NCBI RefSeq assembly: GCF_003918875.1
Contig: NW_025765293.1
Location: forward strand, 62,001 to 126,000
Source: Haliotis rubra
Taxonomy: Eukaryota
Direction: 5' to 3'
DNA: 64,000 nucleotides
Shown here: piece after piece, positions 11,546 to 62,400 of the stretch
How the letters are laid out: each line of letters begins with the position of its first letter
Numbering within the stretch: the stretch's first letter is position 1
The notes under the pieces: generated by a model
Seen by the model: only the letters and a program-made list of their open reading frames with translations
Database searches by the model: none
What the model was told of the DNA's origin: nothing
Program-made: the position numbers and the translations under genes

Positions 11546-12425
11546 CCACATCACGACAGCGCCTTGACAATCATGGCTTTCTTTTCCTCCGTCATGTTGA
11601 TGTCGCTGCCCACCACAAGTCTCATGCTGACAGTGACGACAGGTGCGCTATACACCCCGAACATCGGCCACAGTGGTTGACTGGAGTCTACATTGTCTAA
11701 TGTCGACATCACCTTGTTCTCCTTCACATCAATGAAGACAATCTTCTTCCTGGCGTCATCATAGACAACACCGTAGTGTAGTGTGTGTGATGCCCCTGCT
11801 GTGTTGGGGATGGTGTCAGGTAGATGTAACACTTCCTTTCCCTCCTTCCTGATTTTCCTGCATATCCCTTCATGAGTAGTACACTGGCCGACGGTCAAAC
11901 TGTAGGCATGGGGTACTACGGGCTACAAAGTGAGTCATGTCCATCTCTCCCTCAGCACAGACACCAACCTCCAGGATGAGCCAGTTCCCCGTGAGTGTTT
12001 TGTCCAGTCCGACCCTGGTCTCCGTCTCCCAGTACTGGGGACAATCAGCCAAGGGGAGGGGGATAGTGCTGCATGTGCCCCAGTAGTTCGTCAGTCTCCC
12101 TTTCCCTGCAGACCTGGTGTCAGACTTGCTGTTGATCAAGTCCCCCTCTGTGTTGATGTGGATGCGGTCAAGGTTAATTTTATCTGCGTCATACTTCAGA
12201 TGTATACCTACAACACATAAACGTGGATGAGATGCTCATGTTGTCAATCACTGGGTTGTCTGAATAATTTCAAACCGCCGTCACAAATCTGGAATATTGC
12301 TGAATGCAACGTTAAACAACAAACAAACGAGTAAAAGATAATCTTAAGAACAAAATGATAAAAAATACAACAACGTGAAGGTCAGTTTTGATCACTGATT
12401 GTTATGTACAGGCCATAAAACTACC

Positions 12426-12500
12426 GTATCCCGTGATGGGATTCAAACCATGGACCTTTTGATTGGAAGTCGGATGGCTCGTCCCCATGGCCACAGGAAG
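12426..12500 (-). pseudogene. Degenerate tRNA-like sequence (tRNA-Arg-like pattern)
   Basis: Reverse complement tcctgtggcc...ccgacttccaatcaaaaggtccatggtttgaatcccatcacggga keeps A/B-box-like and anticodon-arm spacing but pairs poorly. Confidence 0.35.
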
Positions 12501-14599
12501 CTGACAAAGCGAAAATGTCATATGTATATCATTTCACGCCCTGTCACATAAACATCGTATCTACTGAGTGTAACATTCTGAAAGAAGGTACAATAAGTGA
12601 CCAGTCCAGCAAACACTAATCAGGTGTCACCGATTCAGAAGACAAATTCTCTCTAGGATGATGTTGCTGTATCCCAAATATAGTCAGCATTGACATCGGG
12701 ATCAGAATTTGTGTTCAGCAAACTATGCTTGTCGTAAGAGAAAACTAACGGAATCGGGTGGTCAGGCTCGCTTGGTTGCCACATGTCATCGTATCACAAT
12801 TGCGTAGATGGATGCTCATGCTGTCCATCACTGGATTGTCTGGTCCAGACTCGAGTATTTGCAGACCGCCGCCATATAGCTGGAATATTGCCGATTGCGC
12901 CGTTAACCAACCAACAAACAAACACTTTGTACGTCGATCATTAGCCAAACAGTTGTTCCAAAACATTCTACTACAGAATACACTGGGTGGCTAATGTAGC
13001 CAAGCCCCCCAAATCACCTCCATGATGTGACAATAGGTTCGGAGGCTGTAGTGTAAGCATAGATGGTAAATGGGTAGATTATGAACGTACACTTCAGCAC
13101 CATCGACTTGTCCAAGGCGTCTGGTTTCAGCAGGTGAACATCGCATTCATTGAGCAGCCCTGCAACATCAACATTGCCATCACTTTGATAAAACAACGTT
13201 TTTATATCTTGTAGTGAATGTCAACAATAAAGGCAATACACAGGCCAAGATTTTAGTGTTTAAACCTGGACTCAGTTATCTGAACGAAGAAAGTAAAGGA
13301 ACAAAGGTGACTGGATTTTACCAAGCATGAAATGGGTGGTTTCTGAGGCTCTCTTCACGATGTTTTCGTTCTCATCGATGCTCTGAAAAGATAACCCTTA
13401 ATCAGACATTATTGTCTGTAAGTATGTATGTCGGGACATATGGGGAGGTAGGTGATAGGTATGTACAAATATCTAAATATTTTAAACTTAACTCGGAAAA
13501 GAACATACAATGTACCGAATATGCCGTATATTTTATCTACTGGCACAGCGATGTTTCTGGATTGCTTTACAATGGTCTGACAACCTTATAACGGCCTACG
13601 ATGTGTAGTCACTATAAAAGTGTTATCTATAAATTGTGCCCTCTTCGTTGTCAACGAATACCTCCAAAATAACTGAATGAGTAAGTCAGTGAGTTTAGCT
13701 TTACACATTTTTTAGCAATATTCCAGCAATATCACGACGGGGACACCAGAAATGGGCTTCACACATTGTGCCCATGTGGGGAATCGAACCCGGGTCTCCT
13801 GCGTGACCCAAAATAACTGAAGTTACCTTGTACCTCTTTTTAATAAAGTGAATGTTTAAAAAGCATATCAGTCTCAGATTGTTAATTCTGATATAGCTTG
13901 CATGTATTTCGATTTTGGTTTTGTCTCAGTCAGTGATCCTCTTCTGTTTTCCAATGTGCTGAATGAATGAATGAATGAATGAATGAATGAAGGAATAATT
14001 TTCACTTAACCCCGCATCAGCAATATTACAGCTATTCGCGGCGAGCGATGTGCTGTAGACATTAGATAGGTAATTATGGACATGTACTTCTGAAAACGGA
14101 TTCAAAATGTTTTAGATCGTTGTCTTACATTTTAATTGGTTCTAGTACATGTAATACTTTGTAGTCATACATACTATCTCATACGCTCTTCTTTAGCGGT
14201 TATGGTGCATTATATTATTTTAATTACCAAACTCACGTTCTTATATTTGATTTCCATCTCAGCTATGAAGTCATGTTCAGTTTGAGTTTCCTTGTCTGAA
14301 ACAACACCATGATGTAAATACACCCTTAAGAATGAATGAATAATTGGTGCTTTACGCCCCATCAGCGATAATGGGACATCCATAAGAAATCTCGACTGTA
14401 AAATTCCAACATATTATGAGCAAGTGTTACTGTTTATAAAGTGCGTGTTTTTTAAGTATCTAATACAACTCGGCTGACTAGACAATGGCATTGTGTCAAT
14501 AACTACCGGTGCTTTAAGTATAATATTAGTTGTTTTTCGAGCAAAAACTCGAGTTGCTGAGAATGATGTGTCACATGTTATATTTGGGATTACACTTTC

Positions 14600-14930
14600 T
14601 CCGTAAAGTACAAATTCTAGTACTTTTTGTTAGGCCGTGATTTGAACCCACACTCTCAGAGTCAGGCACCCGATCACATAAAGTCAGCGATCTAACCTAC
14701 TCAGCCAACGCGGTTTCCATAGAAATGGAAGTCTGACAACTGGTAGACTACATCATGTACTTTGTGTATCCCTCTGACAAATGTGAATTGACACCGCCCA
14801 CATGGCCGACAGCTATAAATAGACAATGTCAGTTTGAAGGACGCTTCTTAGTAAATTACGGATTCTAGACCCAAAACAGTCATAGAATCTGTAATTTACT
14901 GAGAACGTGTAGTCCCAAATACAACATAAC
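14600..14930. repeat. Interspersed repeat containing an antisense tRNA-like segment
   Basis: aagtctgacaactggtag...ccctctgacaaatgtgaattgac core also at about 18590-18870 and 50870-51200. Reverse complement ggctgagtaggttag...gtgggttcaaatc is tRNA-like. Confidence 0.6.
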
Positions 14931-16206
14931 ACTATAGAACGCTGTTCCATTTCTACACGCAATAAAAAATCAACTCTGATCACTTTCTAAATGGCATTGT
15001 GTATCCATAAGAATAGTGCATCTGTAAGCACTATAGAACGCTGTTCCACTCCTACACGCAATAAAAAAGAACGTGCAATCATATCTCATATAAATACCTC
15101 TTGCATATTGTTTTTCCATGTCCTTGGTCACGACAGCCCCAAATCGTGATATGTTTGATTTCAGCTTTGACAAGCCGTTGGTGTTAAAGACAGCTGCTGC
15201 GGGTATGTCCTGTGTTTGAGTCTCAACAGTGTCAAGGAAAGCCCGAGTTGCCTCCCTTACAGAACTCTCCAACTCCAGGAGGTCTGATTGTGAGGCATAC
15301 GTGAGAACCTTGGTGACGTAGTCTAAAACCTCAGAGCATTTCTTCGAAGCTTCTTCACATGTGTTTAGCTGAGTACGGAGACTTGTCTTGGTCGCCTTCG
15401 TCTGACCTTCAAGATCAGTCAGAAGTTCCTTCTCTCGTTGGTCAAGTTGTGATCGCAGAGTTCTAAAAGTATGGCCAATATTTTCTTTCAACGTGTTGTG
15501 CGTTGTATCTGTGATTTCGGTCCCTCGTCTGATATTCTGAATGTTGGACTGTTGGCGAGCTTGTAAGGTTGCCAGCTCAGTTTTGTGTTGGTCCAGCTGT
15601 TTGAGGATACTTTCAGCTACCACATCTAACTTCTCAACTTCATGATCTGCGTGATCTTCAAATCTGCATCTTCCACAAATCAAAATGTTGCATCTCCGAT
15701 CAAAAAGATAAAGAGAGTCAGGGCTGTGGATACTGCAAGGGGTTGGAATGTTTGAGACAGCTGGTTTAAAGTCGCTGAGGTTTTGAAGTACATGTTTTCT
15801 GGTAAGTTTGAAGTTGCTGTGCATATTCTGGCAGTATTCACAGAGGAGCTCTTCACACTCCCGACACCAACACACAGCCTGGTTGCCGTCATCTTCGTGT
15901 GTACAGAGAAGCTCTGTGGGGCGATGTTTGACTGTCAGATGGAATATTTCTTCTGTCTCACTGCATCCTTCTGGAGGCTTGTGTCTGTGAGGTTGACCTC
16001 CGTCTGACAAGTAGAGCATGATATCACACCACCAGCTGCAGATGTCACACGTCTCTCACACACAGCGTGTAGACAGGGCAGTAGGTAGGGGGCGGGGCCT
16101 TTGAGGACAAACTGCTGATGACAGACAGAGCACTTTGGGAAGATGTCCATTCTGAAAGACAGTAGACTTTAATGAGTGATCTCTGTGATATTTCCCAGTA
16201 AGATTA

Positions 16207-25463: not shown

Positions 25464-28400
25464 GTTCTCTAAAGCGGGATTCTGGTGATAATTTTTCCCC
25501 TGGTTAAGCCTTGTAATTTACTGGAGGAGTGGACAGATCTGTGACACACAATGGGGTTGGACTTTAGGTGTTGTATATCAACTCATGTCATATTGACCAA
25601 AAATAAAGCCTGGTATTAACATTGGCGTGGAACTCTAAGACTGGCATATCCATCTCTACACACCCCATTGTCAGAGGTAGACCCAGTGTTTCACGACAGT
25701 AACTCACACACAACTTTCAATTTTCAATGTTGTAAATGTACATCGGGGGCCATGTTGTAATGAGCTCTGTGACATGGTAGGATTGTACATTACACATTAT
25801 TTGTGTAGATACATGGACCAAGGAAAACCACAAAGTAAACCCTCTGTGGGGAATTTAAATTATTTCCAAACACAACAGGACTGATTAGAATATAGACACA
25901 GACAGTTTCGTAACTACATTTCTCTCCTGACACAAGTACCATGACGCATTTAAACTAGGACATTCTATGTCCGCTTCAATCACTTTCATTGTCTAACTGA
26001 ACTGACATCAACATGTCAATCTCACAGCTACAAATATTATATTTCAATCTCTAGCCTCCACATATGGGTATTTATATTATTTATTTCACAGAAGAAAAAC
26101 AAAATATGTCAAGATATTCATGACTTGAAACAACTTTTTACTCAACCATCAACTCAGTTGTTAGTTGTGACATGTCCCAGAAATGTATGAAATGTTTCAT
26201 AAACTAATCAGTTATAACATAATAATAATCATAACAATAATCCTGTGTGGATGTAAAATGCTGCTAGTACACAAATGAAAACTGTCCTGTAGAAAACCGA
26301 CATATTTAGCTAACCTAGTTACATTGTTGTACACAACATACAACACATGAACAGGTAACTTCTATGTCCGCTTCTTTCAGTTCTGTTGTATTGAATTTGT
26401 CTGATAAAGTTGATGTGTGATATTTACAAGTTTACACTGGGTCATGTGTAGTTTATTTCTTAGGCCAGGACTTCATTAATGAGTGATTTCTTGATGTCAG
26501 ACATGAGGATCTCCTCCCAACTGACCACCTTCATGTTTACTGTGCAGCCACTGAAAGGATGGACAGCAAACACAGGGAGAAGATCCTCCTTGAACTCCAC
26601 ATCAACTTTCCCTAAAACAGCCGACCTGTCTACGTCAATAAATCCTATTCTACCCCTCCCGACATCCAACACAACGCCATAGTGGAGGGTGGCCTGTGTA
26701 CCGGGTTTGTTAGACATTGTGTTTCTGTAACACTTCCCCCGCTCCCCCGCCAGACACACCTTGGTACAGAGACTCCCCCGGTGTGTGTCACAGCTCACTA
26801 CACTGACACACCAGGAGCGGGGCTGGTAACAAACACACCACCCACTGTCTACCTGGCTCTCCTCCCCCATACCCACCTCCAGGACAGGCCACCCCAACAC
26901 TCCATCCACCACACCCACCCTGGTGTGGGTCTCCCAGTATCGTGTTGTGTGGGGGACATAGGTGACACTAGAGGGGGATGGAGGAAGGGGGATGGGGGTG
27001 GAGCTACACGTGTGCCCATCAATGCCTGTAGACTGCCACTGTCCGTGTGTTGTGTGGCGGGCCGCGAGTTGGCCAGCTCCCCGTCTGTAGTAACATGGCA
27101 GTAGTCTGTGTTGACTCGACCAGCGTCCAGTTGGAGTTTAGGACCTGGAAATATACAATTGTTATTTTACTGAGTTTAGCAACTGTATTTCCTACAATAT
27201 ATCATTGTATTGTTTGTTCCGTGTCGGTGATTCCAAAACAGCGCACTACATGTTCGGCTGCCATTTTCGTCCGTCTGTAAATACAGCGATACCCGTGCCC
27301 TAGATAGTAATAATAACGATATGATACTATCCAGATGGGTATTTAAATTGTTTGTCATACATTTCTACATGCATTGGTAAACAAATAAACACTGGTTTAA
27401 ATATTTTTTTCACCCAGCTGAGTTTGACCTATTTTGTTGTGACGGCGGTCAGAAATAGACACTACTGCTGCCTAATTAAGGGATTATTTCAACATCATTT
27501 CACTATAAATCTATAACCATAGGTATTCTAAACTCATATCACACAAAATAGTAAAGAGTGAGACAGATAGTATTGCTGTTTGCCGATATTTTTACATTTG
27601 AGTGTTTAACAGACAGAACGTGAACCGGTAACTTCTACGTCCGCTTCAATCACTGAACACAGTTTCACGACACTCGCTGTGTGGGGAAGGTAATTGTCCG
27701 GTCGTGTGTGTTGATTAAGATACGTATTTGTGAATGGTATGGATAATAAACGATTTAATTAAATATATATAAATACTGCAGCATAGCAATAATCAATACA
27801 TTTTAAGTTAAACACACATATACATATTTCACCCTGCAGACTGAAGAAAACTGCAGATTCAAAATTGATCTAGTTTGGGGGCGTTTGTCCGTAAGAGTTG
27901 AATTGAAACAATTTTTAGACAAGGTCAGTATATAACCATTTCCAATCTATTTACTGGTTCTGCAGTTCTCTTATAACATCATATACTAAAGCAGCATGTT
28001 TGGGCACAATTTATCCTTCTTTGGACCACTGAAACTACTGATTTTGAAAATAACGAAATGGTTAAAATGAGGTCTTATAAATGATGCACATTCACATCTG
28101 TTGGGTGGTGGCTGGTTGGTTTGTTGCTTAACGCCGCACTCGGCAATATTCCAGCTCTATGGCGGTCTTTAAATATTCGAGTCTGGACTAGACACTCTAG
28201 TGATGAACAGCATGAGCATCGATCTACACAACTGGGATACGACGACATGTGTCAACGACGTCAGCGAGCCTGACCACCCCATTCCGTCAGCCGCCCCTTA
28301 CGACAAGCATAGATTACCGAAGACCAATTCAAAGCCGGATCTTCACAGGTGTGGGGCGGTGGTGCAGACGAGTAAATGCGTGAAGAGTTCCCTCGTCAAG

Positions 28401-28529
28401 GCGGTGGCCGGACCACCAGATTCAAACTGCTGAAATCCGGATCTTCACCAGCTCGGGTAGGAAAGGCTCGCGGATGCTTTGCAAGGAGTGTTAAGGGTCA
28501 GTCAGGTCACTCTTGCATCCAACAGTGAG

Positions 28530-28890
28530 GTGAGGTGAGGTAAGGTGAAATTGGGTTTAACGTCGTGCTTGAGAATATTTCGCTCATATGACGACGTGCA
28601 TGCGTGTGTATGTGTATGTGCGGCTTCTTGTACTAGCCCAGACGGAAGCTGTTTTTATAGTGCTAACCCACTGAGATACCATGTTGCAGTGAAGCATGAA
28701 TACCCCACTAAGACACATAATACTGACTCCGAGCCGACCAGTCCTTGATGTACCCATTAATGCCGAGCGCCAGGCAGGGACCAACAAGTACCATATTTTA
28801 ACGTCTTTTGGTATGACGAGGTCGGGGATCGAAACCGCGACCTTCCGCTCTCCGGGCGGACGCTCTAACCACTACACCACGGAGGCGGTC
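28530..28890 (-). mobile_element. Full-length tRNA-derived SINE family C with 15-bp TSD
   Basis: Head gaccgcctccgtggtgtagtggttagagcg...ggtttcgatcc (A/B boxes). Central gtcataccaaaagacgttaaaatatggtac...ccctgcctggcgctcggcatt resembles the Meta-SINE core as I recall it. TSD gcatccaacagtgag at 28515-28529 and 28891-28905. Confidence 0.9.
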
Positions 28891-31800
28891 GCATCCAACA
28901 GTGAGTGAAAAGGGCACATCCACAAGAAATCTATCTGGAGCAGAATCTAAATATATTTCATTCAAAATGTTTGAGAAAGAGTGAGTATAATCCCATCACA
29001 AAAAACGTAACATTGTTCTACACGATAATTATAACAGACAAAGGGACAGTATTAATGTGCCTGGATATGAACGTCATAGAAGCGGACAAGAACTATTATT
29101 ATATTATTATTACAATGTTAAAAGGTCATCATTTCTCCTGGCTTCATCGGATTTTGTGAGATCCAACCCGTTATTGGCCTTCATTTGGCGAGTAACCAGT
29201 CAGGGATGCCCCAAAATATATCAGTGATAATCATGATTATGATATAACAAATGTGATATCGGATATATCAAGACCTTTTTCGAGTGAGTTATCTATCATC
29301 ATGAAACCCCCCCAAAAATTATGTCTGATATAGGATTGTGTGAAGTGCACGAAACTACATGATGCGTCATTAATGAAGTTGGGTGTCGAGCTACAATCTC
29401 CAACAGAGGTCTGTATTTCATAGTATACTCGTGATGATTGAAATTTACTTACAGATGATGAAATTAACACTGCGGTCCGGTCTTATGACGTGCAATGTGA
29501 CATAGCCTGTTAAAGAAGAGGTTAAAACATCACAATGACACATTTGTTTCTGAACATAGATAAGATATGAAATAATTGTTACATGATATTTCGTCAGTGG
29601 GTTGTGGTTCAACCGCCTTTACATATTTTAAGTCATACCATAGAGCGTCGAGGTGATGTGGTTATGGCATAAGTTGATGGAAGTCATCACAGATAATTGT
29701 TGTAACATCAACAACAGTGTGATGCACAGACTGGAATCGTCAACTTAAATGAATTAAACAGTTCAAGCATGCAGTTGTTGAAAACTCTATTTTCGTTTTA
29801 AGCTGATACACGTTTCACAGACATGTGTAATTAGGTTTTGGAACATCAGGAATGCCTGTTTTCTTGCCTTTGTGACAAAATGTGAAATTCCATGTTTTCC
29901 AAGTCTAAATTAAACAGCAGTTACTAAACTGCATCATGAATCTGTGGTTTTGTAGGTATGAATATTTATTGAATAACTAGTTCTGTTATGGGAACTCAAT
30001 TGAAATGTAAAACCCGATCGTCTCTGCTGAAAGAGATTTCATTGGGTCCTCAAGACAAAATGTTATGAACGGCTTGATGAAGATCAATGAGGGTACCTGT
30101 TCGCGAACAGAGAGAGCGGGTTATGTCCTACTGGTAGAACGAAAATAAACCAGATTGTACATACCTTGAAACGTAATACCACGTGGATTTGTCTCGCCGG
30201 GGATGAATGCTGCGGTTATGAGCTGAAAGTAAAGGTGTACACTACTCATGCATTAAGACAGAAAATTGTGTGTGTATAACCTTATTCGGTTGACTTTCAT
30301 CCATATCATGTACCATATCATGAGTTTATCCAGGTTCATGCCAAATATACTTGTGACTGAGATTGGGAGTTATGACCTAATTACCTACATGTTACGAGGA
30401 CATGAACTCATTTGAAATGATGGAATGACCTCTCAATCGACCGTGACGTCCCTTGCGACAAGAAGTGAGTACTGATGAAACCCAGAATCCTCATAGGAAT
30501 ATTGGACGTACATTTGTGACAATGCCATGCACTTCTTGTGATGTTAGCTGTTCAGGTTCCTGTGATCTCGCCATTCTGCTGTCTGATCCTTTGAGTTCTG
30601 TTCACAGAAGAAAAAATATGTTTGTATTGTATTTGATACAAGGATGTGATTGTTGGTGTTTACAGAAGATTACGTCAATAAAACGTAACATTAGGTCGGT
30701 AGAAAACACATTTACATTTTCAGTTAATGATGATTTAAGCACTTGGTTATTATATACTGTAAGGTTTGAAAGTTGCTTGTGTTATTTGCTGTGTAGTCCT
30801 CCACCATGGTGGTGTAATGTACCTGGGATGATGCTATGTATCATCTGTCGGAGTTGTTGCCACCGCCCTTCATGCATCTGAAACAACAACAACACTTGCA
30901 TTAAACGGTTCAGCAGAATATGTGTGTGTACATATTTGCATCTGTCTATCCATCAACCACAAACACATACACACACTCACGCACACACACAGTTGGACGC
31001 ACGCAAGCACACACACACACACACTCATGCACTTACATACATAAACACAAACGCGCGCAGGCACATGCGCGCACACATATATACAAACATGGATACATGT
31101 GTGGATAATTGGAGACTATATTTACTGTAACGTGACATCATACCATGATGGTTTCTCGTTCTCTCCTTATCGTCGTCAGCAGATCTGAAATAGAATACAG
31201 ACCAGACCAATATAAAATGATGTTGATGGTTAATTGTCTCTTTACAGCTTATATTCACAATTAAATCAGTTGAAAGTATTATATTTCTTTGCATACGTGA
31301 AACATAAATATAGCTTAGTAACAAGTATTCTGTTTTATGTAAAACTATTCAAACTGACTGAATCATAAACGCAAAGGTCCAGTTCAATTAGTCAAACGAG
31401 ACAAGGGTCCATATCCGTTAGTAGTATCTAAACGTAAACTGTCTTGATTTATATTCACCTTGTGAAGTAGGCTGATAATCTGGAATATGATCCATGTTGA
31501 GACTGGAGGCGAGACCACCAAATGTGTCGATAAGTTCCTCCAGGGCTCTCTGGCCTTGAAAGGTAAGAAGGATTCTTGTGTCTTGTGTGTCATCTTCTGA
31601 AAGCTCCCTCTTCATATTTTCATGACATTTCGTCTGGAGTACATCTGTGAGAGTAATGAGCTCCTCTCGTCTTGTAGATTCAAGTGTTCTCTGGGTGTAG
31701 TCTATCGCCGATACTATTGAAGTATGGACGTCATGTAAAGTGTCAAGTTTCTCTTCAACCATTTCGTTTGGGGCTTGGAGACTCATTTGAAGTTCTTCCA

Positions 31801-34800
31801 TGAGTTGTTTCTGTCGATGAAGGAACTTTGCAGCAACACTTTTGCAAACTGCCATGATGTCCTCTTTCAGCTTTCTCTGCGTCTCTGCCAGTTGATTTTG
31901 GTGACTGGTGACACTTCCCATCCTGTCAGTGACATCTTTCAGTTTATGCTGCTGCTTCTGTACTTGCTGCTCTAGCTGACCCTTTGCTACGTCATAGGCC
32001 TGATTGAGGTCTTCATTCTGGTGATCCTTGTGGGCCCCATGCACACATATAAGACAGACAGCTTTCTTACACGTGTGGTCATACAGCTGCAGTTTGTTGT
32101 CAGGGTGGTCACTGCAATTACCTTCCTCAGCCACAGCTTCATGGAGATATTCTCTGTCTGGTTGATGTCACTCGTCCAATGGTTTTGATTCGGTTTCAGT
32201 TTGTCATGCATGTTATGACAGTCGGAACAGAGGCGTACATTACATTCGTGACAGAACATCACAGCCGGTGTAGCATGATCTTCTTCGGTGTAGTTGCATT
32301 TCTTCCCTTTGTCAACATTTTCAGAGTAGGCAGCTTCATTTCGTCTGACATGATCTACTGTTGTCTGTTCCATGGTGACCTCGCGGCCACAGGAAGGACA
32401 GTGGATGCATTCCTCTTCCATTCCTGTCTGTGAAGCTCGGTAATCAAGGCATGGCTTACAGGCAGAATGAAGGCATGGAAGAAGACGAAGCTGACTCTCA
32501 TCACAGCAGGACTCAGTCGAAAACTGGCACACTGTCTCAGTGGAACCTAACAGCATAAAAATAACACAAAATGTAGTTAGACATTCACAATTTTGTTGTA
32601 ATTAATGTTATGGTTTGGTTAACTTTTCGTGAGGTTTTTACTCACCTTACTCAAAAACTACATTTACATTGATTGAATGATGGATTATTGGCCTACCATA
32701 GTGAATTTTGAATTATTAGTTAACGATTAAAAACAAAGTTGTCAATATAAGCTATCACTGTGTCCAGACACAATTACATCTTAACTGTCAAGGGTGTAAG
32801 GCGACTAATTGGAACAGCCACCTTGCCATGCAAATGTGCCAAATTGGAAAACGATTGTAGTTTTTTTAAAATGTGGCCAAACACGGCCCTCGAAAGTTTT
32901 CTGCTAGACTGTAAATATACATGACGGATTCTTGGTCTTAATGTACCTGCACGTTGGATTTGCTCTGTATTGTCCACCCTGTCTGAGACTGTGACCTTGA
33001 ACACCCACTAGAGCATCGTATGCCTCCTGTTTCTTCCCGCAGTGTCTGAAACGACAGATATCGCTGCATCTCATTTGTAGTTTTATTATTATGCTGTGCA
33101 TGTAATTGTTCCTCTTTGTTTCAGACGTTGTCCAGATTACGACTTACAACACATAGCATTACATCTACCCACCTTCTCCACGTTCTCACATTTTGCTTGA
33201 GACTGCTGCAACTCATCATTTGACTTTGACAATGCTGTCTTCACTGAAAAGACAAAGATGCGAGGATTGAACCTGATATCAGTTTGTCACATTCCAGAAA
33301 TTGATTGTCATGTTTTATTGTAAATGTAGTCATCATATCTTTCCCCAAATATGACAAACAGCAATATTACAGGCATCACCATCGACGCTGACAAATTAAA
33401 CTATGTTTTCGAAATGGCGAATATAAATTATGTTAAACAATATTTACTGTATTATTTCACGAAATAAGGTTAATTATGACATCACAGTAAAGGTGACATC
33501 CAATTTCATCACAGATAATCGGTATCGACATAAGAACGATTAGGTTTGACATCGTCATCGATGTATTCTTCTGTCAGCATATTCATGGACAGAAAATTTC
33601 TATTCACAAAAGCCAAGTCAGTTTGACTGTCATGTGGGTTGACTGTCATCATCCCACTCCATGACTCTAACGATCCCAAAAAGATCATGGTCAAGAATAG
33701 TTGATGTGGTGACATTCTCGCTAACGTTTTACTGCCAGCGGTAAAAACCCAGGCAAAATCGTAATTTGTCGGTAAACATTTCACGTAATTCACGCACAGG
33801 CCGTCTCTGGTGTTGCCTGGCCCCGTCGATCTACACTCTGCACCTCCATCATTCCCACAATTCGTGATTTTGTCTGGTCATATCTCTGAGGTGCCTGCCT
33901 GCATTTTGCGATTGTGAGTTACTCCATGGTCGCACACATTTTGGCTTCTGTGTGCACATTCTTCTGTTGCTGCGTTCAGATGCAATAATTGATAAGGTAA
34001 ATATATATCTCAAATATATGTACATCCAGGTCATTAGTTCTCCCATTAGTTTGTTGGTAATATATGTTATAAAAAATAGGTATCAGCTTACGAGCTTCAA
34101 TTTGTACGTTCTTTCCTTCTATCTCTGACATGTGTTCATCACTTTCTTTCTTCATTCTTTCCTCCAGTTCAGCATGGTCAATGTTGTTTTGTTCAATATG
34201 TTGCTCAAGTCCTTCTATTGCCTGAAAACAAACGTGAACGCCCAGTAAACAAGTATATAACGACATCTTGTAAACAAACGATCTGACATTTTATCACATT
34301 AACACGTCTTATATAAGTTTCAAAGTAGCTGAAAGATTACGTTTTAAGATTAGTACCGTTGGGAAACACTAAATGCCAGTGCAGTAATCGTCTGATCAAA
34401 CTATTCACAAGAGAAACGTCATTAAACAAGATAAGAATACAAGATTGCAATGCATAATCACAACTTACAGATTTCAAGTCAGCTATCTCTCCATCTTTTT
34501 TAGCAAGTTCCTTTTTGTACTGAGCTTCCAGTTTGTCCTTGTTAACATAGACGAGATCTGTGTTACCTAAAAATATAACAGTTTCCTTTTTGAAGAAAAT
34601 GGTGTCACAAGATTTATCATATGAAGCGCACAGGGGAATATTCTGAGGCAGTTTTCATTCGATTAACTTAAATATATTATTGTGAAAGGCATTCTTAATT
34701 GCCACTAATATCGAAGGCACATCTTGGAGAAGATTGTAGTGCCACAATTTGACAACCATCATGCGCTCACAAGGCCGGTTTACACGAGAACACATGTCCC

Positions 34801-35418
34801 CAGAGAAGTGCAGTGATGGATTTCCCTACTTCTGGAGACAATAACAACTCCTCCATGGCCAACACAAAGTCAAGACCTGAATCATTTCAGGACGCTGTGT
34901 ACTTCAGAGAGCTGCACTGTACAGAATCTTGCTGATCAGGAACAAGCGCTCGACGAAGTGAAACAGACCGTGTCTGATTCTGTCTGTGAGAAGACATTTC
35001 AATCAGTCATCCCAGTGAGTAGTGGCTTCACATCATACTGACATTATCGCCTCTTTTAGTAGCTTCAACCAGCGACTTTTGAATACTGCTTGATTCAGCC
35101 ATTGAGGATGATGGGCGGGTACAAATGAGGCCCAGGGCAGGAAAACAGACTGGCATGAAACTGTCATTCTGTTAGAGTTGACTGCTGTCGCCTTGACAGA
35201 AGGCCTGTGACATTTGTAATCTCTTGGTACATAAAGTGAAGCGTCGCCATAATAACAGCTACTGCCAGTATTTATATATTTATGGTATATATTTATGTAT
35301 ATATACAGTTTTAACATTCTTACTTTACTAGGTTCACTTGGCAAATCCATGTCTTTGATGCCTAGATTTTTAGCAATATTTGTACGCACTTCTAGAAACC
35401 CTTGGAAGGTTTGCCTAC

Positions 35419-35693
35419 CTGCTTCTGTTGAGATTTTATCAAGTCTTTCCTTGATGAAAGGCTGTGTAGTGTCGAGGACAGCACAGAGCGTCTTGTAACC
35501 TTCTACTCCCTTCTTTTTAAGCGTCTCCAACACCAGCTCACATTTCTCTGTCCCTAGCTTGTCTACACCTATGATAGTCTGTCTGTGTGAAGATACATTT
35601 CTCATACAAGGCATCCAACACAGGGTCGACCTGAAGGTTCTCCTTCAAAAATGTGTGTGTCTTCTGAAGGACAGCAACGTGGGAAAGGTCCAT
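35419..35693 (-). CDS. CARD (caspase recruitment domain) exon of gene B, with one frameshift near 35553
   Basis: Acceptor ttatag at 35720-35721, ATG at 35693, CARD-like hydrophobic pattern (L..NL.VDPVLDAL....IFT..D...; C..VL..L.KKG..GY..LC.VL...QP.I...L), phase-1 donor G|gtaggc. Confidence 0.8.
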
Positions 35694-35959
35694 TCTGTTA
35701 TGTCAGGTGGTATAAATATCTATAACAGCAAAATCACACGTTATCAATAAGAGGTATGTTTATTGTCTTCTATATTTAGTATTTATGAAATATAGGGATT
35801 TATAATGAGTTTCGAGGTGGTATAATGCAAACATATCAGCCACAAAAAGAAACTGTACATTGTTACAGTATCTCTAAATTTGAAAACATAACAACGGTTT
35901 TCACGTAAACTGTAATGGGTGGATATAGAGATCATAAAAGGAATGCAGAACAGCATGTT

Positions 35960-36660
35960 TAAAGTTTTCTTGGGGATATGGAATTGGTACGCCACAGATG
36001 CCACTTCATTTCATTGCAAACATTCTTTATAGGGGAGAGATCGTGAATGTGCGGGCCAAGGCAGTACTTGAACATTGTGCTGTTGAAGAAATGCCACAAC
36101 AACCCTATCCGTGTGAGGACAGGCATTGTCATGTTTGGATGTCAATCCTGGGTTATGAAGTTAATTAAATTGCCACTGGTTCGAGAATCTGATGTCTGTA
36201 GCCCACATCAGTCAAATTGTCCTAACAACTAAACGTATTCTCTGACGTGCATTTATCTCATCCAAAATCACGGAACCAGCACTAATAGCGATTCCTCTCC
36301 TTGACATTGTCTTGCCCAAATACTACCCACGACGCTGGTAGACACGTTGACGTCAGTCACTACGGGAACAGTTAAATGTGGACTTGTCTGTAAAACCAAC
36401 AGTCCTCCATCACAAATAAGGTACACGGAGATGATTTTGACAAGCCTTTGGCTCTTCTCTCGATGTCGTCGTATCAGGATAGGTCGTATGGCGGGACGAC
36501 GTGGTTGCATCCCATAATGACGTTGAAGCTTTCCCTGACTTTGTCGCCGAGTCCAAGAATGGTCTGAGCAGTAGTAACAGTGGTGAACACTGCATTCTGG
36601 GATATGATAATCACCCACATCCATCTGTCATGTTTTAGCGCCGTGGCGCGTGTTTCCATG
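35960..36660 (-). mobile_element. Decayed Tc1-family transposase
   Basis: Frameshifted minus-strand pieces: HYGMQPRRPAIRPILIRRHR, CQNHLR..WRTVGFTDKSTF, YRHQILEPV, HDNACPHTDRVVVAFLQQHNVQVLPWPAHS.DLSPI. These are DD34E-type motifs. Confidence 0.85.
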
Positions 36661-37170: not shown

Positions 37171-38861
37171 GCAGGTGACAATGCAGGTTAGTGTGCCTGT
37201 GTGTGCGTGCGTGCGGGCATGCGTGCCGAAAGAAAACCACATCAGCTGGAAGTAATTAGAAATATTTTATGTAGCTGCACCTTAAGTCATATTTCCCTAC
37301 CCCTTTTCGTTACAGCTCCTTATAAACACACGAACACAAATAGTGAACCTAATATCCATCATGGCTAGCTACTGTCTTGAATACATTCAAGGATTCGAAC
37401 ATTAATCTGCCATCCTAGTTTTTAAATAAGTCTACAAAACTAGACGTCCATGTGACCAAGAATCCTTACAGTACAGTTCTGGTTCTTACGAAGTAATGAT
37501 TTAATGTATTGTACTGTATATTAAGACGTAATAACAACATTATCCAGGTATCTGGTAATTTCCCTCAGAACGCAATATATTTGTTTCGACGCAATTGTTT
37601 AAGGTTCCTGTGAACTAGACCACATATGCTTCACATAAATCCCTACTCTGGGAATAACCTTGATATGACACAAGAAAAAAACACCACACAACCCAAAATG
37701 TCCACTGCCATGTTGAACAATGAATCAAACCTGGAACATCAGGACAAGGGGCACGCCGCATATCTAACTCATCTGTTCAAAGTATGAACGCCTGTTCAGC
37801 CAGATACTGTTGAAAATAAGTCAGTGTTCAGTTAGGTGAAATTCGAATAGATCGATATTGAGAAAAAACGAGAATTTGTGGTCAGTCCAGTCCGCATGAT
37901 AAACGGTGTTAAGAATGCTGTCTGACGACATACATAATGCGTGCAGCTTTTAATACTGTGTGAAGTCAAATTAAGTTCATAGTGTTCTCACTGCTACTGC
38001 AATCACAAAAAGTTATGCATGTGTCAATTGAATGTGGAGGCGAACAAGGAGATGGTCTATAATGGTAGGTACATGTATATAATGTCAGAAACAGAAACGA
38101 CACCCAGACATACACTTTGATTCAATTCTTTCAAACCACAATTTGTTTATAAAAATATTACTTTTTACTTATACAAATGTCCATACAGTGTATCTGTATT
38201 GTACATTGACAATTTCAAAGCTTACTGGTGATATTGCTATATCTAAAATTAGGCATAACTTAGATAACATATCACTGGAAACACCTTACCCGCAGATAGA
38301 TACAAGACTCGCGAGGAAAGACCAGCGCCTTGAGCATGCACTAGTATCATGGATAAGTGCGCTATATAAATATCCTATAATCATATTAAATAATGGCAGA
38401 AGACCCATGTAGCAACCATGTTTTCAGGGACATATTACGCAATGCGTCAGCCTTCATGTGCGCTCATCGTTGGCTCGTAGTGAACTCAACATGTAAGCTG
38501 TGTGGGCATATGTAAGGTAGTGTCGCTTAACAGTAAACCCAGTTTAAGCGCTGTATCAACAAATGAGCTTGTTTACATGTTGTTTTATTTAAGGAACCGG
38601 GGGTAAGAGGATGTGTACAGACTGTGAGTGATTCCGTACAATTACCCTCTATTTACAACATATAGCTCATACCGGATCCATACACAGAGGGAATTGCCCA
38701 AGCCATATGACGATCTGCCCTCACTGTTCACAAGGACTGTAGCTTCACCAGTTAACGAAAATAAATAAAAAAGAATAACTCAACTGGGTCCTACCTGATC
38801 TATGTCTGTCGTGCGCTTGTAGGTCCTCTCAGTTAAAGTCGTCCTCGGGTAGACTGCTTTC

Positions 38862-39470
38862 TCCAGAATAGTGACAGACGGTGCTTGTCAGTCAGGCCCT
38901 CTGGTCCTCTGTGTCCAGCCAGAATAATGACAGACAGTGTTTGTCAATCAGCCCCTCTGGTCCTCTGTGTCCAGCCAGAATAATGACAGACAGTGTTTGT
39001 CAATCAGCCCCTCTGGTCCTCTGTGTCAAGCCAGAATAATGACAGACGGTGTTTGTCAATCAGCCCTCTGGTCCTCTGTGTCCAGCCAGAATAATGACAG
39101 ACGGTGTTTGTCAATCAGCCCCACTGGTCCTCTGTGTCCAGCCAGAATAATGACAGACGGTGTTTGTCAATCAGCCCCACTGTTCCTCTGTGTCCAGCCA
39201 GAATAATGACAGACGGTGTTTGTCAATCAGCCCCTCCGGTCCTCTGTGTCCAGCCAGAATAATGACAGACGGTGTTTGTCAATCAGCCCCACTGTTCCTC
39301 TGTGTCCAGCCAGAATAATGACTCGGTGTTTGTCAATCAGCCCCTCCCCTCTGTGTCCAGCCAGAATAATGACAGACGGTGTTTGTCAATCAGCCCCACT
39401 GTTCCTCTGTGTCCAGCCAGAATAATGACAGACGGTGTTTGTCAATCAGCCCCTCCGGTCCTCTGTGCCC
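38862..39470. repeat. 56-bp minisatellite, about 11 copies
   Basis: Unit ccagaataatgacagacggtgtttgtcaatcagccccactggtcctctgtgtccag. Confidence 0.95.
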
Positions 39471-41574
39471 AGAATGAAATGTGCTATATGAAAGAGGCGA
39501 CTAGAATTCACAGTACACAAACAGCCAAAGTACACGTCTCGTGATCACTAACGTAACACCCCATTCCTGGGCAATCGATGGTCTACGTGCAGCCCGACAG
39601 CACGTTCAGGTTAGAATTGTTTACGACAGCAAAGGTAGGTCAGCCGTATCAATATGACATGCAGTTGGATAGTATGTCAAGTCTAGTGATTGTTTTGTGC
39701 AGTCGTCATGACTCGCTGGCTTTGACAGGCAATGTGTTCTTAACAACCGATATGACCCTGTGATCTATAGTCTAATGTTTAGCTTCTTCACTGGTAATTA
39801 TCACTGTACTATAGCCAGCATGCATTGACTAACAAGACATGTCCACACACTGAAATTACTGACTGAGGCATGGTGGTTGAGAGAAGAGTAAAAGGATTGG
39901 GTTTAATGCTGTTTTGAAAACTTATTCATGATCATTTATATCACAGCATGTCAAATAGTGAGGTATGAAAGACTGAAATGGTTCGTCCTATAACTTTAAT
40001 GACAATCCGATAGCCTGACTAACATAACCAGCACAATGAAACACACGGTAAGTTTGTCCAAACAGAGTTGAGTCAGACTGTTTTCCTCAGGACGGACTAG
40101 CTGAATACATCCTTAATGCAATAAATGCATTGTCCGAACAATATCTCTTACTTGTTATTTGTATACTCATCAAGGAAAAACGTTGTCGAAGGAACTAACA
40201 TTTTGATATCTGTACATTTGATGTCCTTAGTAGACTGGGAGTGGGGTGGGGTAGGGTGGGGGTTGTGTGGGGTGTGGTTAGGGATGAAGGGTAGGTAGGG
40301 GGGTCAGCACGTGCTACATAACTGTAGACGGGATGACAGCAAACATGGAGTCTTCTCGGGTTAACATCATGTGTAAGTCTGACTCGCTCATGACACAAAT
40401 CTTGCTGTGGGAATTGCCCGTGACACCGCTGATAATCACATGTTCACAACTACGGGTACATGTTTTTCATGTTTTGGGCCATATCCAGCTAATATAATAT
40501 ATATTAAATTTTGGGAACGTTAAGCAAGCTGGAACTCCCGATTTCATCTAATATTGCCTCATGTTATGCTAATTTCCCAACACACAGGAACTTTTGAAAT
40601 AAGACGTTTCCACCTTTTCAATACATTATGCTATTTAAGACCCAATATTTCCGATGCATGCAGCAAAATAGGTGCAATTTTAACTTGTTTGAGTGGCATT
40701 TTAGAAGTTGAGAGGTACAATATAGAACAAGTTTTATGGATAACAACTTCTTTATTTCGTGAGTGCGACGTTTCGATAGAGATTCTTGTACCGTTGTCAA
40801 GCAAGAGTGATACATGAAGTGTAGGAGCTGCATATATATACTGTATATAACAATAAAACAACATAATAGACAAAGGAAACAACATAATTGCCATGATTGG
40901 CTAAGCAGTAAGCTGATGAAACCAGTGAGTACACAAAGTGAATGGAAGCCAGAGATGTAGTTACAATGAGATGTCAAATAAAGAGTGACGTTACATTGTA
41001 AACTCCGAAACGTGACTAATAACTAAAAGGTAAGTGATGGTGTCATTTTTTTATTTAGAAATGAAATGTTTGTTACATCGTTACTTCCTATTTCAGATGA
41101 CTCTCAGGTTTTTAGTGTTTGGTGATTGTATGCATCCTCTTTCACTCCCCAGGTGGGATACGAGTCCCATGATATTTGAAAAGTAGCATGAAAACTTCAC
41201 AAGTAATATTGTACGAATATCCTGGTAACGAACATTTCAGTAACAAATTTCATATTCTGGCAAATCAAGCAGTAAGTTACCATTAAAACACACAAGTTTT
41301 GACTATTGTTTTTCTTTTCCATGTGGCATACTTTCTAAAGTATGCTCTAAATGTACCTTCTACGCATGGAATATATTCTATAGTATGACCAGAAATTATT
41401 GAGAATGTTAGGAATATGTTTAATTGGATTTCTAGTATAAACAACCTTGACCAGCTATCAAGTGCTTGGTTTCATTCAAGAGAGACAACTCCGTTAATGC
41501 TTTAACATTAGTTTGTGAAGAGTTATCCCCTTTGTTTACTTGCTAGCAGACGACATTTATAGGTGATCCTCAGT

Positions 41575-42322
41575 ATGGATGATTTAGAGAAGAGGAAGTT
41601 GATTTTAGAGTATTATAACAAGGACATCAGATCAGCTAAAGTGATTTCAAGTAGAACAGGCATCCCGTTGTCCACTGTTTATCGTATTTTGAAAAATATT
41701 GCAAATGGATATGGCATTGAGCACCAGGGAGGCGCAGGTAGGCCCAGAAAAGTGACTGTCGTTGACAGGAGGCGGCTTGGTATTCTTGTTTCTTAAAACA
41801 AACGAAGGAGTTTAGAAAACTTAAGGCTGGATATGATTGATAGCTGCATGCAATGGGTTGGCAGAAAAGTCGAGGAATTCCATCACCGATCATGAAACCT
41901 GAACAAAAGGAGCGAAGTTTGAACTGGTGCTTACAGCATAGAAATTTTAACTGGGACAATGTGATTTTCTCAGATGAAAGTTCTGTGTGGCTGTTTCCTA
42001 ATACACTGAAATTCTGCACCAAACAAACTGAAAAACCTTTGTATCAGCGCCCAAAGTACAGTCCGAAACTTAACGTGTGGGGTGGCATATCTGTGTTAGG
42101 GGCAACGCCCCTCTGTGTATTTGAAAGGAATATGAACAGTGAGCAGTACACAGATATTTTCGAGGGACTTTTACTTCCATCTGCTCATGTGTTCTATGGA
42201 AATCTTGGATTTTCCAGCAGGAGAACGACCCAAAACATCGTTCAAAGCATTCACAGGCCTGGTTTCGGACCCAAAATATGACATTATTAGATCGGCAAAA
42301 CTATAGCCCTGACCTAAATCCT
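41575..42322 (+). mobile_element. Tc1/mariner transposase pseudogene, 3'-truncated
   Basis: MDDLEKRKLILEYY...IPLSTVYRILK...GAGRPRK (HTH plus GRPR), NVIFSDES, LNVWGGIS, MNSEQY, FQQENDPKH, YSPDLNP, then breaks. Frameshifts lie between the pieces. Confidence 0.9.
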
Positions 42323-59451: not shown

Positions 59452-62400
59452 GATATGTCGTGATAAACGTATATCTCCAAATGTGTTGATAATGTTTGTC
59501 TAAGAAATTCAATCGTTACCTTATCACACTGTTCATTCCCTGTTCAACTATCAATGTGACCATACTCGCATGTAAGTTAACAGTAGTATAATGTGTGAAA
59601 TATTCCACGACTCAAGACCACGCGATGCTCGAAATCCAATGATTTTTCAACATGCGAAATAAGAATTGCGAAGCAAGTTGTATAATGATTTTTTAAAATG
59701 CGTTTTCTTAAGTATTACGGTTTCTCCGATAGTAATGACGTGCTTTTTTCAACATATATCTTTATGGCCAACTGACACAATTTTATTTAGAAACAATGTA
59801 GAAAAAACCTTCAACTTCAGTAATAAATAGTGGGCAAAAAGGAATACTTACTAGGTAATGGGCAATGTAGTAGCAAAACGTATTACACGTCCATTGCTTA
59901 CCATCAATCTCATATTCAAATCATTCGTGAACCTCTGCGTCATAACTATGGCTCTAACTGGTATTATCCTGTACCTTACATCATTTTGTATCATTATATA
60001 TTGTGTTCATAACAGTTGTTGCCACTTTACTGTCACCACGTCCATATCAGTTCAACTTTAAAAACACTTCCCCGTACTTTAATATATGCCTCTGTACGTC
60101 ACACTAAAACCAACACCTAAACGTCGCTTCTAATTTCGATAGACGGCGTTCATCCATCTTACCCTTATTCACCTGCTGCTTGCCTGATGCATATAAATGG
60201 CGTACTGTTGCATTTCAAATATTACAACTCATTGCACGTGGGTTCTATAGCCTGCAACATTGCCACACCACCATGCGGTATTTGAGCGGCTGGATCTTAT
60301 CATAATACCTGAGAAATTATCGACCCAACTCGAATACCCGTAAAGATCCGTGTTAGAATTGGTCTTCAACAACCCACGCTTGTCGTTAGAGGCGACTAAC
60401 AGGACGGGTGGCCAGGCTCGCTGACATGGTTGACACATGTCACTGTAACCCAATTGCATGGGTTGATCAGTGGATTGTCTGGTCCAGACCCGACGCTATA
60501 CACACCGACGCTTTATGTTTGCCACATTCGATGGGTGCAGTGGTAAACAATAAACAATCAAACAAAACAGACCCATCCCGAACCTACCCACGAGTCGGTC
60601 ATCTAAGGATGTTAAATGTGTAAATCAACACATGCTTAATGTGTACAAACTGAATGGATATCCTTTTCAGTCCTTTCAAGTTTGTCTCCAAAAAAGTGTA
60701 CACATATATACGAGAAAAGAATTGATTCTTCTGCAAGTAATATTTGTATGACCTTAGATCCGTGTGTGACTTTGATAGACACAGTTACTGAAATGCATAG
60801 GGACCATACTAATACAAATGCTTACACGTGATATGGTGTCCTATTTCAGAAGATCACCCACTGATAATCTTATTGAACATGGTTTCCTTAGAGCAGGTTA
60901 GCTGATGAACAAGATCACATAGATACTATTGGTCAAACAAGACATTTCCTGAAGACTTCCAACACATGCACATGCTAAGCTGTCACCCATGTCAACATGT
61001 AAGCTTTTCAATTTATCCCCAGTTATCTTCTTATGAAACTGTTGGACAATGATGGCGTGTTACATTGTTACGCCTACTAAATCTGAAAACCTCGGCGTTG
61101 GTCTATATCAGTGGCAACATCTATAATCTATATAAGTTATGCGTTGTTCTGTCTAAGAACTCACTGTATATGGTATTGAACATGCTGCACTTAAAGGACA
61201 TCGATACATTCAGTCACGCAAGAGGTTTCAACACAGCTACGTAATGTAAGTCCTAGTTCATAGTATGGTGATCTACCTTCAGTTATTGGCGATCTTTATC
61301 CCGTGTTTTAAATTGTATTGTCTTCTTTGATTAAAATGTTTTAGTTTTACAGGCTAGTTTTATATTCATATTTGTGATACTCTAGTATTATTACTGTCAT
61401 TCGCAGACAGGTTTTACTTTTCAAAATGTTTTCATTATTTATTGTATAATTTGTTTTCGTCACGATATGGCTGAGATATTGCCGATGTGACGTTAGAGAT
61501 TAAGTCACTCACTCACTCAACACAGCACAGCTACATAACGCGCCATGTACATGCACACAAAGTCATTTTATTATCGCCGATATTAATCGCGGTGTACTTT
61601 CAACATGAGTAGTTTCTGCTTTGAGAGGCATTTTAGAATTTGTAAAGATGAAGAAAAACCAAGTTCTATGGATAGTTAACTTCTTCATTGCAATGAGTGC
61701 AACGTTTCGGTGGCGGTACTTAACACTATCACTAACTAACTTGTGGGAACCAACTGCAAACTTTATTCAGATGGATTGTACGAGGATCACGCATCAAATT
61801 GCTAAAAAGCATGTACAAATATCGTTCATGTGAACACCCGCGTTTGTTAAGAATTCGCCAATTTTCACCGATTTTTTATCATTTACTGAACTCATGACAC
61901 AAACGTGGAAGGGCAATAATCGGGATACGAACGTTCTGCTGACTTTGAAACCCGCACCACTTTGCTGTTGGTGACGGTGTCTTTTAAGGTGTTTCAGCCA
62001 GCTCCGCCCTTGTCACATGTCCCGATGCAATAGTTCTGATTCGTTTATAGTTACGCCACCCATGGTCACATGTCGTAACTCCTGACCGGAGAGCTTCTCA
62101 GTGATTCACAGTCAACTATTACTTTAAGAGTCCTTTGCATTCTGGCACAAGTATTTGCCTGCCACGCCACACACATGATCGATCACATGCAGGACCTACC
62201 ACATGCTCACCCATACCTGCTGCCGCCAGTTAGCGATCTAATCACATATTAGTTAATGCACACTCTCATGCGACGTACCCCATAGCAGGCCTCACGCCAG
62301 TCCAATCACTGAGTCCTCAGTTGCCATATTTAATACTAGACACATCAAACATGACATATATGTCTCAGTTCAGTCGCCCCTTTCCATTCCGACATCCCCC

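Follow-up and report, generated by a model that had tools for sequence, protein, structure and literature searches.

The stretch of the Haliotis rubra genome analysed here (64,000 nucleotides, positions 62,001 to 126,000 of contig NW_025765293.1 in assembly GCF_003918875.1; hereafter the window) carries on its minus strand a series of exons that would encode, in this order, a CARD, a coiled-coil linker, a RING finger with two B-boxes and a second coiled coil, and a SPRY-like domain. An earlier note, made from the letters alone, read these exons as a single gene for a TRIM protein capped by a death fold. The locus raises the questions of whether the CARD exons and the TRIM exons do belong to one gene and what kind of protein such a gene would make. 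We found that they are one gene, because splice joints, matching phases and a frame open from the CARD to the RING were all present in RNA; orthologous gene models from other abalones agree. With moderate confidence, we regard this gene as a member of a transcribed TRIM subfamily specific to the Haliotis lineage, which would have received its CARD and a coiled coil of about 125 residues in front by exon addition and which may serve as a sensor-adaptor.

Logan contigs of three RNA runs (X1-X3) and of a further run, X5, were placed on window positions 30400-36300. X5 acted as DNA in this interval: the introns were covered and not one spliced joint was present. The pieces of the gene all lie on the minus strand at the positions given by the earlier note, and the RNA contigs connected the CARD exon through four short exons to the RING exon by minus-strand GT..AG joints at 35419>34566, 34469>34221, 34092>33243, 33173>~33045 and 32947>32546, and continued beyond it by further joints at 31459>31184, 31144>30877 and 30823>30597. 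Nearly all joints were detected in three of three RNA runs and none in X5; the joint to a non-coding leader exon was seen in X3 only and the joint of exons 4 and 5 was clean in X2 and X3. The two joints to which the earlier note had drawn attention, 35419>34566 and 32947>32546, each occurred in contigs of all three RNA runs. One aligned joint, 33031>33173, was an exception to the CT..AC ends seen on the plus strand, since the aligner broke there at an indel and left 13 letters between. The phases match throughout, exons 2-5 ending in phases 0, 1, 0 and 1.

The RING exon begins in phase 1 with no ATG after its acceptor, just as had been described. An in-frame ATG is intronic and lies 10 nt upstream of the acceptor. 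RNA depth was 0 in the introns and also at this ATG and the sequence immediately before exon 6, so that there was no sign of a transcript starting there despite the in-frame ATG. The contigs overlapped in a chain that ran from the CARD exon to exons 2 and 3, then over exons 2-5, and then from exon 5 to exon 6, which strongly implies, short of proof, a single molecule extending from the CARD to the RING. The frames of the last exon were located by tblastn, and sampled words of this exon were present at a share of 0.23-0.24 in four RNA runs of the same organism, approximately equal to the share in DNA runs. The coordinates of all exons are collected in Table 1.

The earlier note had also counted at least four frame breaks in this copy. 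The letters of the window do carry breaks at 35555, within 33030-32984, near 32128, near 27010 and possibly near 27147. This count describes the assembly and not the expressed gene, as the reads contradicted the break at 35555, those in exon 5 and the one within 32092-32205. In the letters of the window, the RING-like/B-box1 and B-box2/coiled-coil segments of the large exon 6 stand in two frames. Five or more breaks of the window are thus assembly errors or those of a rare allele. When the read indels that could be placed were applied, the frame stayed open from the ATG of the CARD over all four linker exons and on into the RING, and the boundary between exons 5 and 6 resembled that of the orthologue; the version of exon 5 found in the reads restores the orthologous frame (..EEQEAYDALVGVPRSQSPDR..). 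The three differences in exon 5 (33030, 32998 and 32984) are at short homopolymers. The last exon shifts frame near 27010 in a C-rich Pro/Ser tract, beyond which 183 codons are open; unless splicing uses the acceptor at 27144, a second shift may be present near 27147. The damage to the window consists of 1-2-nt indels only, the placeable ones situated in short homopolymers or the C-rich tract, and no nonsense substitution was found in the correct frames. Because of the small size of the indels, the lack of nonsense changes and the 183 open codons, consensus errors or a very recent null allele are favoured over an old pseudogene, and most of the breaks are probably errors of the assembly consensus or those of one null allele.

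Table 1. Exons of the CARD-TRIM gene and differences between window and read contigs, in window coordinates
Feature	Position	Strand	Remarks
Non-coding leader exon	38797..38915	-	GT donor after 38797, GATCAG/gtagga; 5' end undefined
Exon 1: short 5' untranslated region, ATG 35693, predicted CARD	35419..35719	-	end phase 1; 1 extra window base at 35555
Exon 2, 98 nt: start of predicted coiled-coil linker 1	34469..34566	-	joints 34563>35416 and 34220>34468, CT..AC ends, 3 RNA runs
Exon 3, 130 nt: predicted coiled-coil linker 1	34092..34221	-	joints 34220>34468 and 33243>34092, 3 RNA runs
Exon 4, 71 nt: predicted coiled-coil linker 1	33173..33243	-	joint 33243>34092 in 3 RNA runs, 33031>33173 in X2 and X3
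Exon 5, 99 nt in window, 100 nt in transcripts	32947..33045	-	end phase 1
Exon 6: variant RING, B-box1, B-box2, predicted coiled coil	31459..32546	-	entered in phase 1; joint 32544>32945, 3 RNA runs
Exon 7, 41 nt: spacer	31144..31184	-	joints 31184>31459 and 30877>31144, 3 RNA runs
Exon 8, 55 nt: spacer	30823..30877	-	joints 30877>31144 and 30597>30823, 3 RNA runs
Exon 9, 86 nt: spacer	30512..30597	-	joint 30597>30823; loose end at 30512 runs into exon 10
Exon 10, 58 nt	30165..30222	-	end phase 1; X2 loose end at 30512 (140 letters) is the start of exon 10, LITAAFIPGE
Last exon: predicted B30.2/PRYSPRY, stop 26462-26460	26460..27191	-	AATAAA at 26457; acceptor 27191 or 27144
Difference in exon 1	35555		1 extra window base; missing in every contig of all 4 runs
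Difference in exon 5	33030		1 extra window base (A run); reads' version in 3 of 3 RNA runs, in X2 and X3 as the broken joint of exons 4 and 5
Difference in exon 5	32998		window 1 base short (G on plus strand); reads' version in all RNA contigs
Difference in exon 5	32984/32986		window 1 base short (G on plus strand); X1 and X2 wholly and X3 for most of its depth have the reads' version
Difference in exon 6	within 32092-32205 (near 32128)		window 1 base short; RNA contigs 1 letter longer, 3 RNA runs

A frame change in the same C-rich Pro/Ser tract was observed in the H. rufescens gene LOC124127912 (L001 21162-21838), where it truncates the RefSeq protein P0152. After the shift the B30.2 frame of this gene is open for 185 codons, with 85% identity to the neighbouring copy. 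The common shift could be due to an error-prone tract or to recurrent real frameshifts. A separate observation concerned a loose end of X3 at window position 32943, where an exon resembling exon 5 was spliced to another RING exon (..RECANFQL.., similar to the second of the copies within H. rubra P0001). The window does not contain this other RING exon, so the genome expresses one or more further paralogues from another place.

The N-terminal domain is predicted to be a CARD, both by Pfam and by the modelled fold of an orthologue, and the death fold announced by the earlier note was thereby recovered. Residues 1-51 of the window protein matched Pfam CARD with an E-value of 6.6e-5 and 23.3 bits (gathering cut-off 23.9). 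The second half of the window CARD had no Pfam match by itself, yet it aligned end to end with the family CARD, and the two halves together tile the family alignment from one end to the other. The gathering score of PF00619 was reached by the relatives P0152, P0002, P0010, P0012 and P0178 (34-48 bits against the cut-off of 23.9), with E-values of 2.3e-8 for P0152 (residues 8-85), 1.4e-8 for P0010 and 2.6e-10 for P0012. The AlphaFold2 (AF2) model of residues 1-100 of the orthologue P0152, which is 70-73% identical to the window halves, had a pLDDT of 80 and formed a six-helix bundle with a split first helix (5-11/13-19, 22-31, 37-45, 48-62, 64-77 and 79-91). All of the top 50 Foldseek matches of this model in the PDB were CARDs, at TM 0.7-0.8. 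In comparison of the family CARD profile with the PDB, RAIDD was matched at 2.4e-7, Apaf-1 and CARD8 at values up to 2e-5, BIRC2 at 0.0043 and CARD9, in part, at 0.0098. The best CARD matches are recruiting CARDs, namely those of RAIDD, Apaf-1, CARD8 and caspase-9. Derivation of the CARD and its coiled coil from CARD9/CARMA was also considered and was not adopted, given weak and partial profile matches. A linker of 104 residues, rich in E, K, Q, L and A and without proline, fits the coiled coil predicted between the CARD and the RING.

The RING of the CARD-TRIM protein is internal and not N-terminal, and seven of its eight canonical zinc-ligand positions are filled. The second ligand is Ser, so that the first zinc pair reads CQFS as the earlier note had it; CQFS is kept in four orthologues and is replaced by a Thr version (CQFT) in P0152. 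E3 ubiquitin-ligase activity is uncertain because this ligand of the first zinc site is missing. A Cys 7-8 residues past the first Cys of the RING is conserved and, judged from the alignment, might stand in as a ligand. Canonical CxxC is present in the paralogue P0012, which has a weak zf-RING_2 match, and in a CARD-less TRIM type that includes the neighbouring gene A. B-box2 matched Pfam zf-B_box with 25.2 bits against a cut-off of 24.1 (E 1.8e-5). B-box1 was matched at the right position by the ANCHR-like B-box model (20.7 bits, 4.5e-4) and by zf-B_box (19.1 bits), both below cut-off; B-box scores in orthologues reached 52 bits. The predicted coiled coil behind the B-boxes gave weak matches only, to Pfam coiled-coil families, over residues ~40-150 of the piece. 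In structure rows of the Atlas, residues ~235-930 of P0012 aligned to mollusc TRIM clusters at TM 0.3-0.5.

The C-terminal domain is predicted to adopt the bent beta-sandwich fold of B30.2/PRYSPRY, in line with the earlier description of the last exon as SPRY-like, though the Pfam SPRY match is below threshold: 21-22 bits (E 1.5e-4) for the window piece and 17.8 bits for P0003, with a cut-off of 26.3. Two relatives carry a precomputed PF00622 match. The family profile of this region matched only B30.2 chains in the PDB, and weakly (MID1, 9.5e-4). The AF2 model of P0003 residues 570-809, 69% identical to the window piece, had a pLDDT of 89 and a pTM of 0.88, and its Foldseek matches in the PDB were mostly B30.2/PRYSPRY domains (TRIM7, TRIM65, TRIM25, MID1 and BTN3A1; E 2.5e-9 to 7e-8), with TM by target of 0.65-0.81.

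Relatives with the same architecture were found in abalones. An exhaustive phmmer search with the B-box2/coiled-coil region returned 198 proteins, the best 14 of which were far above the general TRIM background. All named ones among these 14 are Haliotis RefSeq predictions; the other four, P0006, P0008, P0009 and P0013, are three unnamed entries and a further Haliotis fragment. CARDs were present in four representatives among the 198 matches, all from Haliotis. In H. rufescens XP_048246607.1 (P0152, 774 aa) the CARD comes first and is followed by the B-boxes, and the same domain order occurs in XP_046346938.2 (P0010, 867 aa) and XP_048246814.1 (P0012, 946 aa), which have just 24-27% identity in the query region. 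Orthologues of P0012 were found in H. rubra, H. asinina and H. cracherodii. The window gene and the gene of P0152 (H. rufescens LOC124127912) are collinear exon by exon, at 76-81% nucleotide identity in the exons. The intact relatives that the earlier note advised seeking elsewhere do exist: RefSeq holds predictions with the order CARD, coiled coil, RING, two B-boxes, coiled coil and B30.2 from H. rufescens, H. rubra, H. asinina and H. cracherodii, which belong to at least three divergent paralogue lineages. Their labels are 'uncharacterized protein' or the misnomers PML-like and early endosome antigen 1-like.

Word-index searches with full-length P0012, with the P0012 CARD alone together with full-length candidates, and with the B30.2 of P0007 returned Haliotis proteins only, and Atlas searches gave no large cluster combining a CARD with a B-box. 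The literature searched on CARD-TRIM proteins, on death-fold, B-box and SPRY combinations, on Haliotis TRIMs and on mollusc TRIM surveys contained no description of the architecture. The earlier note knew of no described protein with this architecture, which agrees with the papers searched and does not hold for databases, in view of the automatic predictions from four Haliotis species. The CARD-first TRIM architecture is so far restricted to abalones, where it exists as unstudied automatic predictions.

In a tree of the RING/B-box/coiled-coil (RBCC) part with the B30.2, nine of the ten CARD-bearing rows fell into one well-supported clade of 16, the rest of which consisted of partly truncated models and one pair of CARD-less TRIMs. 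The H. rubra protein P0178 (an XP entry of 424 aa) has a CARD, a short coiled coil and a B30.2 and is without RING or B-boxes. Its place on the tree among CARD-less TRIMs suggests a second, separate shuffle of the CARD module. We also observed that P0002 and its isoforms (H. rufescens LOC124139557, 1159-1253 aa) have an internal CARD at residues ~240-420 and start in the coiled-coil/spacer part of an upstream tandem copy; P0002 is probably a merged model or a read-through of tandem paralogues.

Pairwise NG86 comparisons with H. rufescens, made over short regions and giving rough numbers, yielded ratios of non-synonymous to synonymous substitution rates (dN/dS) of 0.22 for the CARD, 0.39 for RING-B-box1, 0.33 for B-box2 and coiled coil and 0.90 for the B30.2. 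Between the B30.2 domains of two H. rufescens tandem copies the ratio was 1.37. On these figures the CARD and the RBCC part are under purifying selection and the B30.2 evolves at about the neutral rate or faster. This combination of a conserved signalling or scaffold part with a fast recognition part is the one that pathogen-facing TRIMs display. The synonymous rate (dS) against L001 was uneven along the gene (0.9 for the CARD, 0.44-0.51 for the RBCC exon and 0.24-0.28 for the B30.2), a gradient that could come from gene conversion between paralogues in the last exon or from the noise of short regions.

Several observations weigh against reading the locus as one functional gene of this design. 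The CARD and the RING were never found within one RNA contig, and the link between them is a chain of short overlapping contigs. As to the four small exons and the SPRY-like exon that the earlier note placed behind the RING exon, RNA joints or a loose end bore out exons 7-10, but the splice into the last exon was not seen; the contigs covered 30400-36300, and the breaks in the last exon fall outside this span of the read check. No CARD-TRIM relative was found outside Haliotis, by searches whose limited sensitivity does not prove absence. Pfam scans of the window pieces and of close orthologues gave no RING model that matches the subfamily. In X5 only 31-54% of the depth summed over the exon-5 sites has the frame-restoring version, and the window version may therefore be an allele or a paralogue. 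A B30.2 dN/dS near 1 fits relaxed constraint as well as diversifying selection. The shortness of the contigs, together with the merged tandem model among those of H. rufescens (P0002) and the existence of CARD-less RefSeq isoforms (P0159 and P0003), would suit two neighbouring genes, one with the CARD and coiled-coil exons and the other with the TRIM exons, that are joined by occasional read-through splicing or by contig assembly. We hold this to be highly improbable, because the joints of exons 2-6 recur in the three RNA runs (that of exons 4 and 5 clean in two), the phases match and leave a single frame open, other joints into exon 6 were not reported, the stretch directly before exon 6 has zero RNA depth and exon 5 is followed by neither a stop codon nor a terminal exon. 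The exon order is, moreover, kept in three paralogue lineages as distant as 24-27% identity in the B-box2/coiled-coil part. Two separate genes were rejected on account of the splice joints, of phases that match and of the frame that stays open. In our judgement it is somewhat unlikely that six or seven small indels make the window copy a true pseudogene or a null allele, the clean transcripts being derived from a near-identical paralogue or the other allele. The breaks are indeed present in the letters of the window, the exon-5 sites are mixed in the DNA-type run, the last exon of H. rufescens LOC124127912 shifts frame in the corresponding tract, the B30.2 ratio is ~0.9 and a paralogous transcript from outside the window exists (the loose end at 32943). 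Nevertheless, the extra base at 35555 was in no contig of four runs, several RNA contigs departed from the window in just 0-1 other letters over 136-306 nt, and introns had a similar frequency of indels relative to the DNA run, which is what consensus errors would give; the restriction of the damage to 1-2-nt indels, the placeable ones in homopolymers or the C-rich tract, without nonsense changes and with 183 codons open after the last-exon shift, also speaks against a null copy.

As to function, the CARD-TRIM protein may be a cytosolic innate-immune sensor-adaptor. Its fast-evolving B30.2 would bind a pathogen-derived or altered-self ligand, and the RBCC part would build dimers and higher-order assemblies. 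Such assembly could gather the N-terminal CARDs and so nucleate a CARD-CARD complex in which a caspase or adaptor with its own CARD takes part, a logic like that of pyrin with a CARD in place of the PYD. A pyrin-like sensor that clusters CARDs is a plausible inference. The main competing explanation, which we consider quite unlikely, is that the CARD regulates the ligase from within, as in cIAP1, and holds the RING or RBCC part inactive until a signal arrives, the output being ubiquitination instead of the recruitment of a caspase or adaptor. A CARD and a RING in one E3 are a known pairing, the cIAP1 CARD is among both the fold matches (3t6p) and the profile matches (BIRC2, E 0.0043), and the CARD of CARD9, likewise among the fold matches (6n2m), is restrained by its own coiled coil. 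A ligase-centred function is made less secure by a RING that lacks one canonical ligand and has no Pfam RING match, and the closest CARDs, as noted above, are recruiting ones. P0178, in which CARD and coiled coil lead straight to the B30.2 without the RBCC part, suggests a role of the CARD that is independent of the RING. A bolder form of the sensor-adaptor reading would have abalones independently build a single-chain sensor of inflammasome type, with a B30.2 cue, TRIM oligomerisation and a CARD filament that activates a CARD-caspase, as an exon-shuffled protostome counterpart of pyrin diversified into several paralogue lineages. We regard this form as unlikely.

Like pyrin (MEFV/TRIM20), the abalone protein has an N-terminal death fold, behind which come B-box, predicted coiled coil and, at the C-terminus, B30.2, and it would likewise couple the sensing of a ligand or state to death-fold polymerisation. 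Its death fold is, unlike that of pyrin, a CARD and not a PYD, and it also has a RING-like finger, which pyrin lacks, two B-boxes, and the extra coiled coil of some 125 residues between the death fold and the RING. A language-model feature search placed a 'putative Pyrin' cluster third with a score of 0.81, which serves as a lead only. The likeness appears convergent, since no kinship beyond common domain families was found and the family was seen only in abalones. Thus the pyrin-like design proposed by the earlier note stands as an order of domains and not as membership of the class: the abalone CARD-TRIM may work like pyrin, and it is not a member of pyrin/TRIM20. With class IV TRIMs (TRIM5alpha, TRIM21, TRIM25, TRIM7, TRIM65 and MID1) it shares the order of RING (here a variant), B-box, coiled coil (here predicted) and B30.2 and the fast B30.2, and it differs from them in the N-terminal CARD and coiled coil, in a first zinc pair of CQFS instead of CxxC and in a Pfam SPRY score below cut-off. 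The ligases cIAP1 and cIAP2 (BIR-UBA-CARD-RING) also carry a CARD and a RING on one polypeptide, and in them the CARD controls RING activity. In contrast to these, the abalone CARD comes first, and the RBCC part and B30.2 are present; Pfam scans of the window pieces or orthologues gave no BIR match, and no UBA was found by Pfam. In CARD9 and CARD11/CARMA1 the CARD is directly followed by a coiled coil, as here, and the CARDs of CARMA1 and CARD9 were among the fold matches. Those proteins are without RING, B-box and B30.2, and the abalone CARD profile is nearer to RAIDD, Apaf-1 and CARD8.

Further features of the window lie upstream of the CARD exon and beyond the 3' end of the gene. An X3 RNA contig from ~35721 continues into 119 letters that match the window from 38797 onward, which is the basis of the leader exon in Table 1. 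No ATG is present in the visible part of this exon. A 56-bp unit repeated 11 times (93% matches, window 38863-39472) lies directly upstream of the leader exon and overlaps it, and the position of this array would place the transcription start in or beside it. Short open reading frames at 36011-36160 (minus strand) and 41853-42281 (plus strand) have, by eye, the look of Tc1/mariner remnants (..DNACPHT..LPWPA.S..), which is unconfirmed; one of these transposase-looking frames sits in the first intron, ~300 bp upstream of the CARD exon. Neither gave a Pfam match at E 0.01. Gene A (~11554-16160, minus strand) encodes a CARD-less TRIM of the P0176/P0171 type with a canonical CxxC RING (MDIFPKCSVCHQQF...), and its ATG directly follows the acceptor, as the earlier note had observed. 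It has the divergent B30.2 of the CARD-TRIM gene (gene B), at 36-41% identity. With gene A and the CARD-TRIM gene the window thus holds a small TRIM cluster of two different subfamilies.

For annotation, the locus illustrates how small indels in an assembly would get a gene miscalled as a pseudogene, while its relatives stand under the labels 'uncharacterized', 'PML-like' and 'early endosome antigen 1-like'. Animal innate immunity draws on TRIM-B30.2 proteins and on death-fold adaptors as two of its main building sets. To our knowledge, the only known union of the two is vertebrate pyrin, through a PYD and with no RING, and we know of no clear equivalents of NLRP or ASC in molluscs. A conserved and expressed family of CARD-first TRIMs in a mollusc would show that the wiring of a sensor to a death fold was invented more than once, and it would offer a simple system for asking about inflammasome-like, CARD-driven caspase activation in protostomes.

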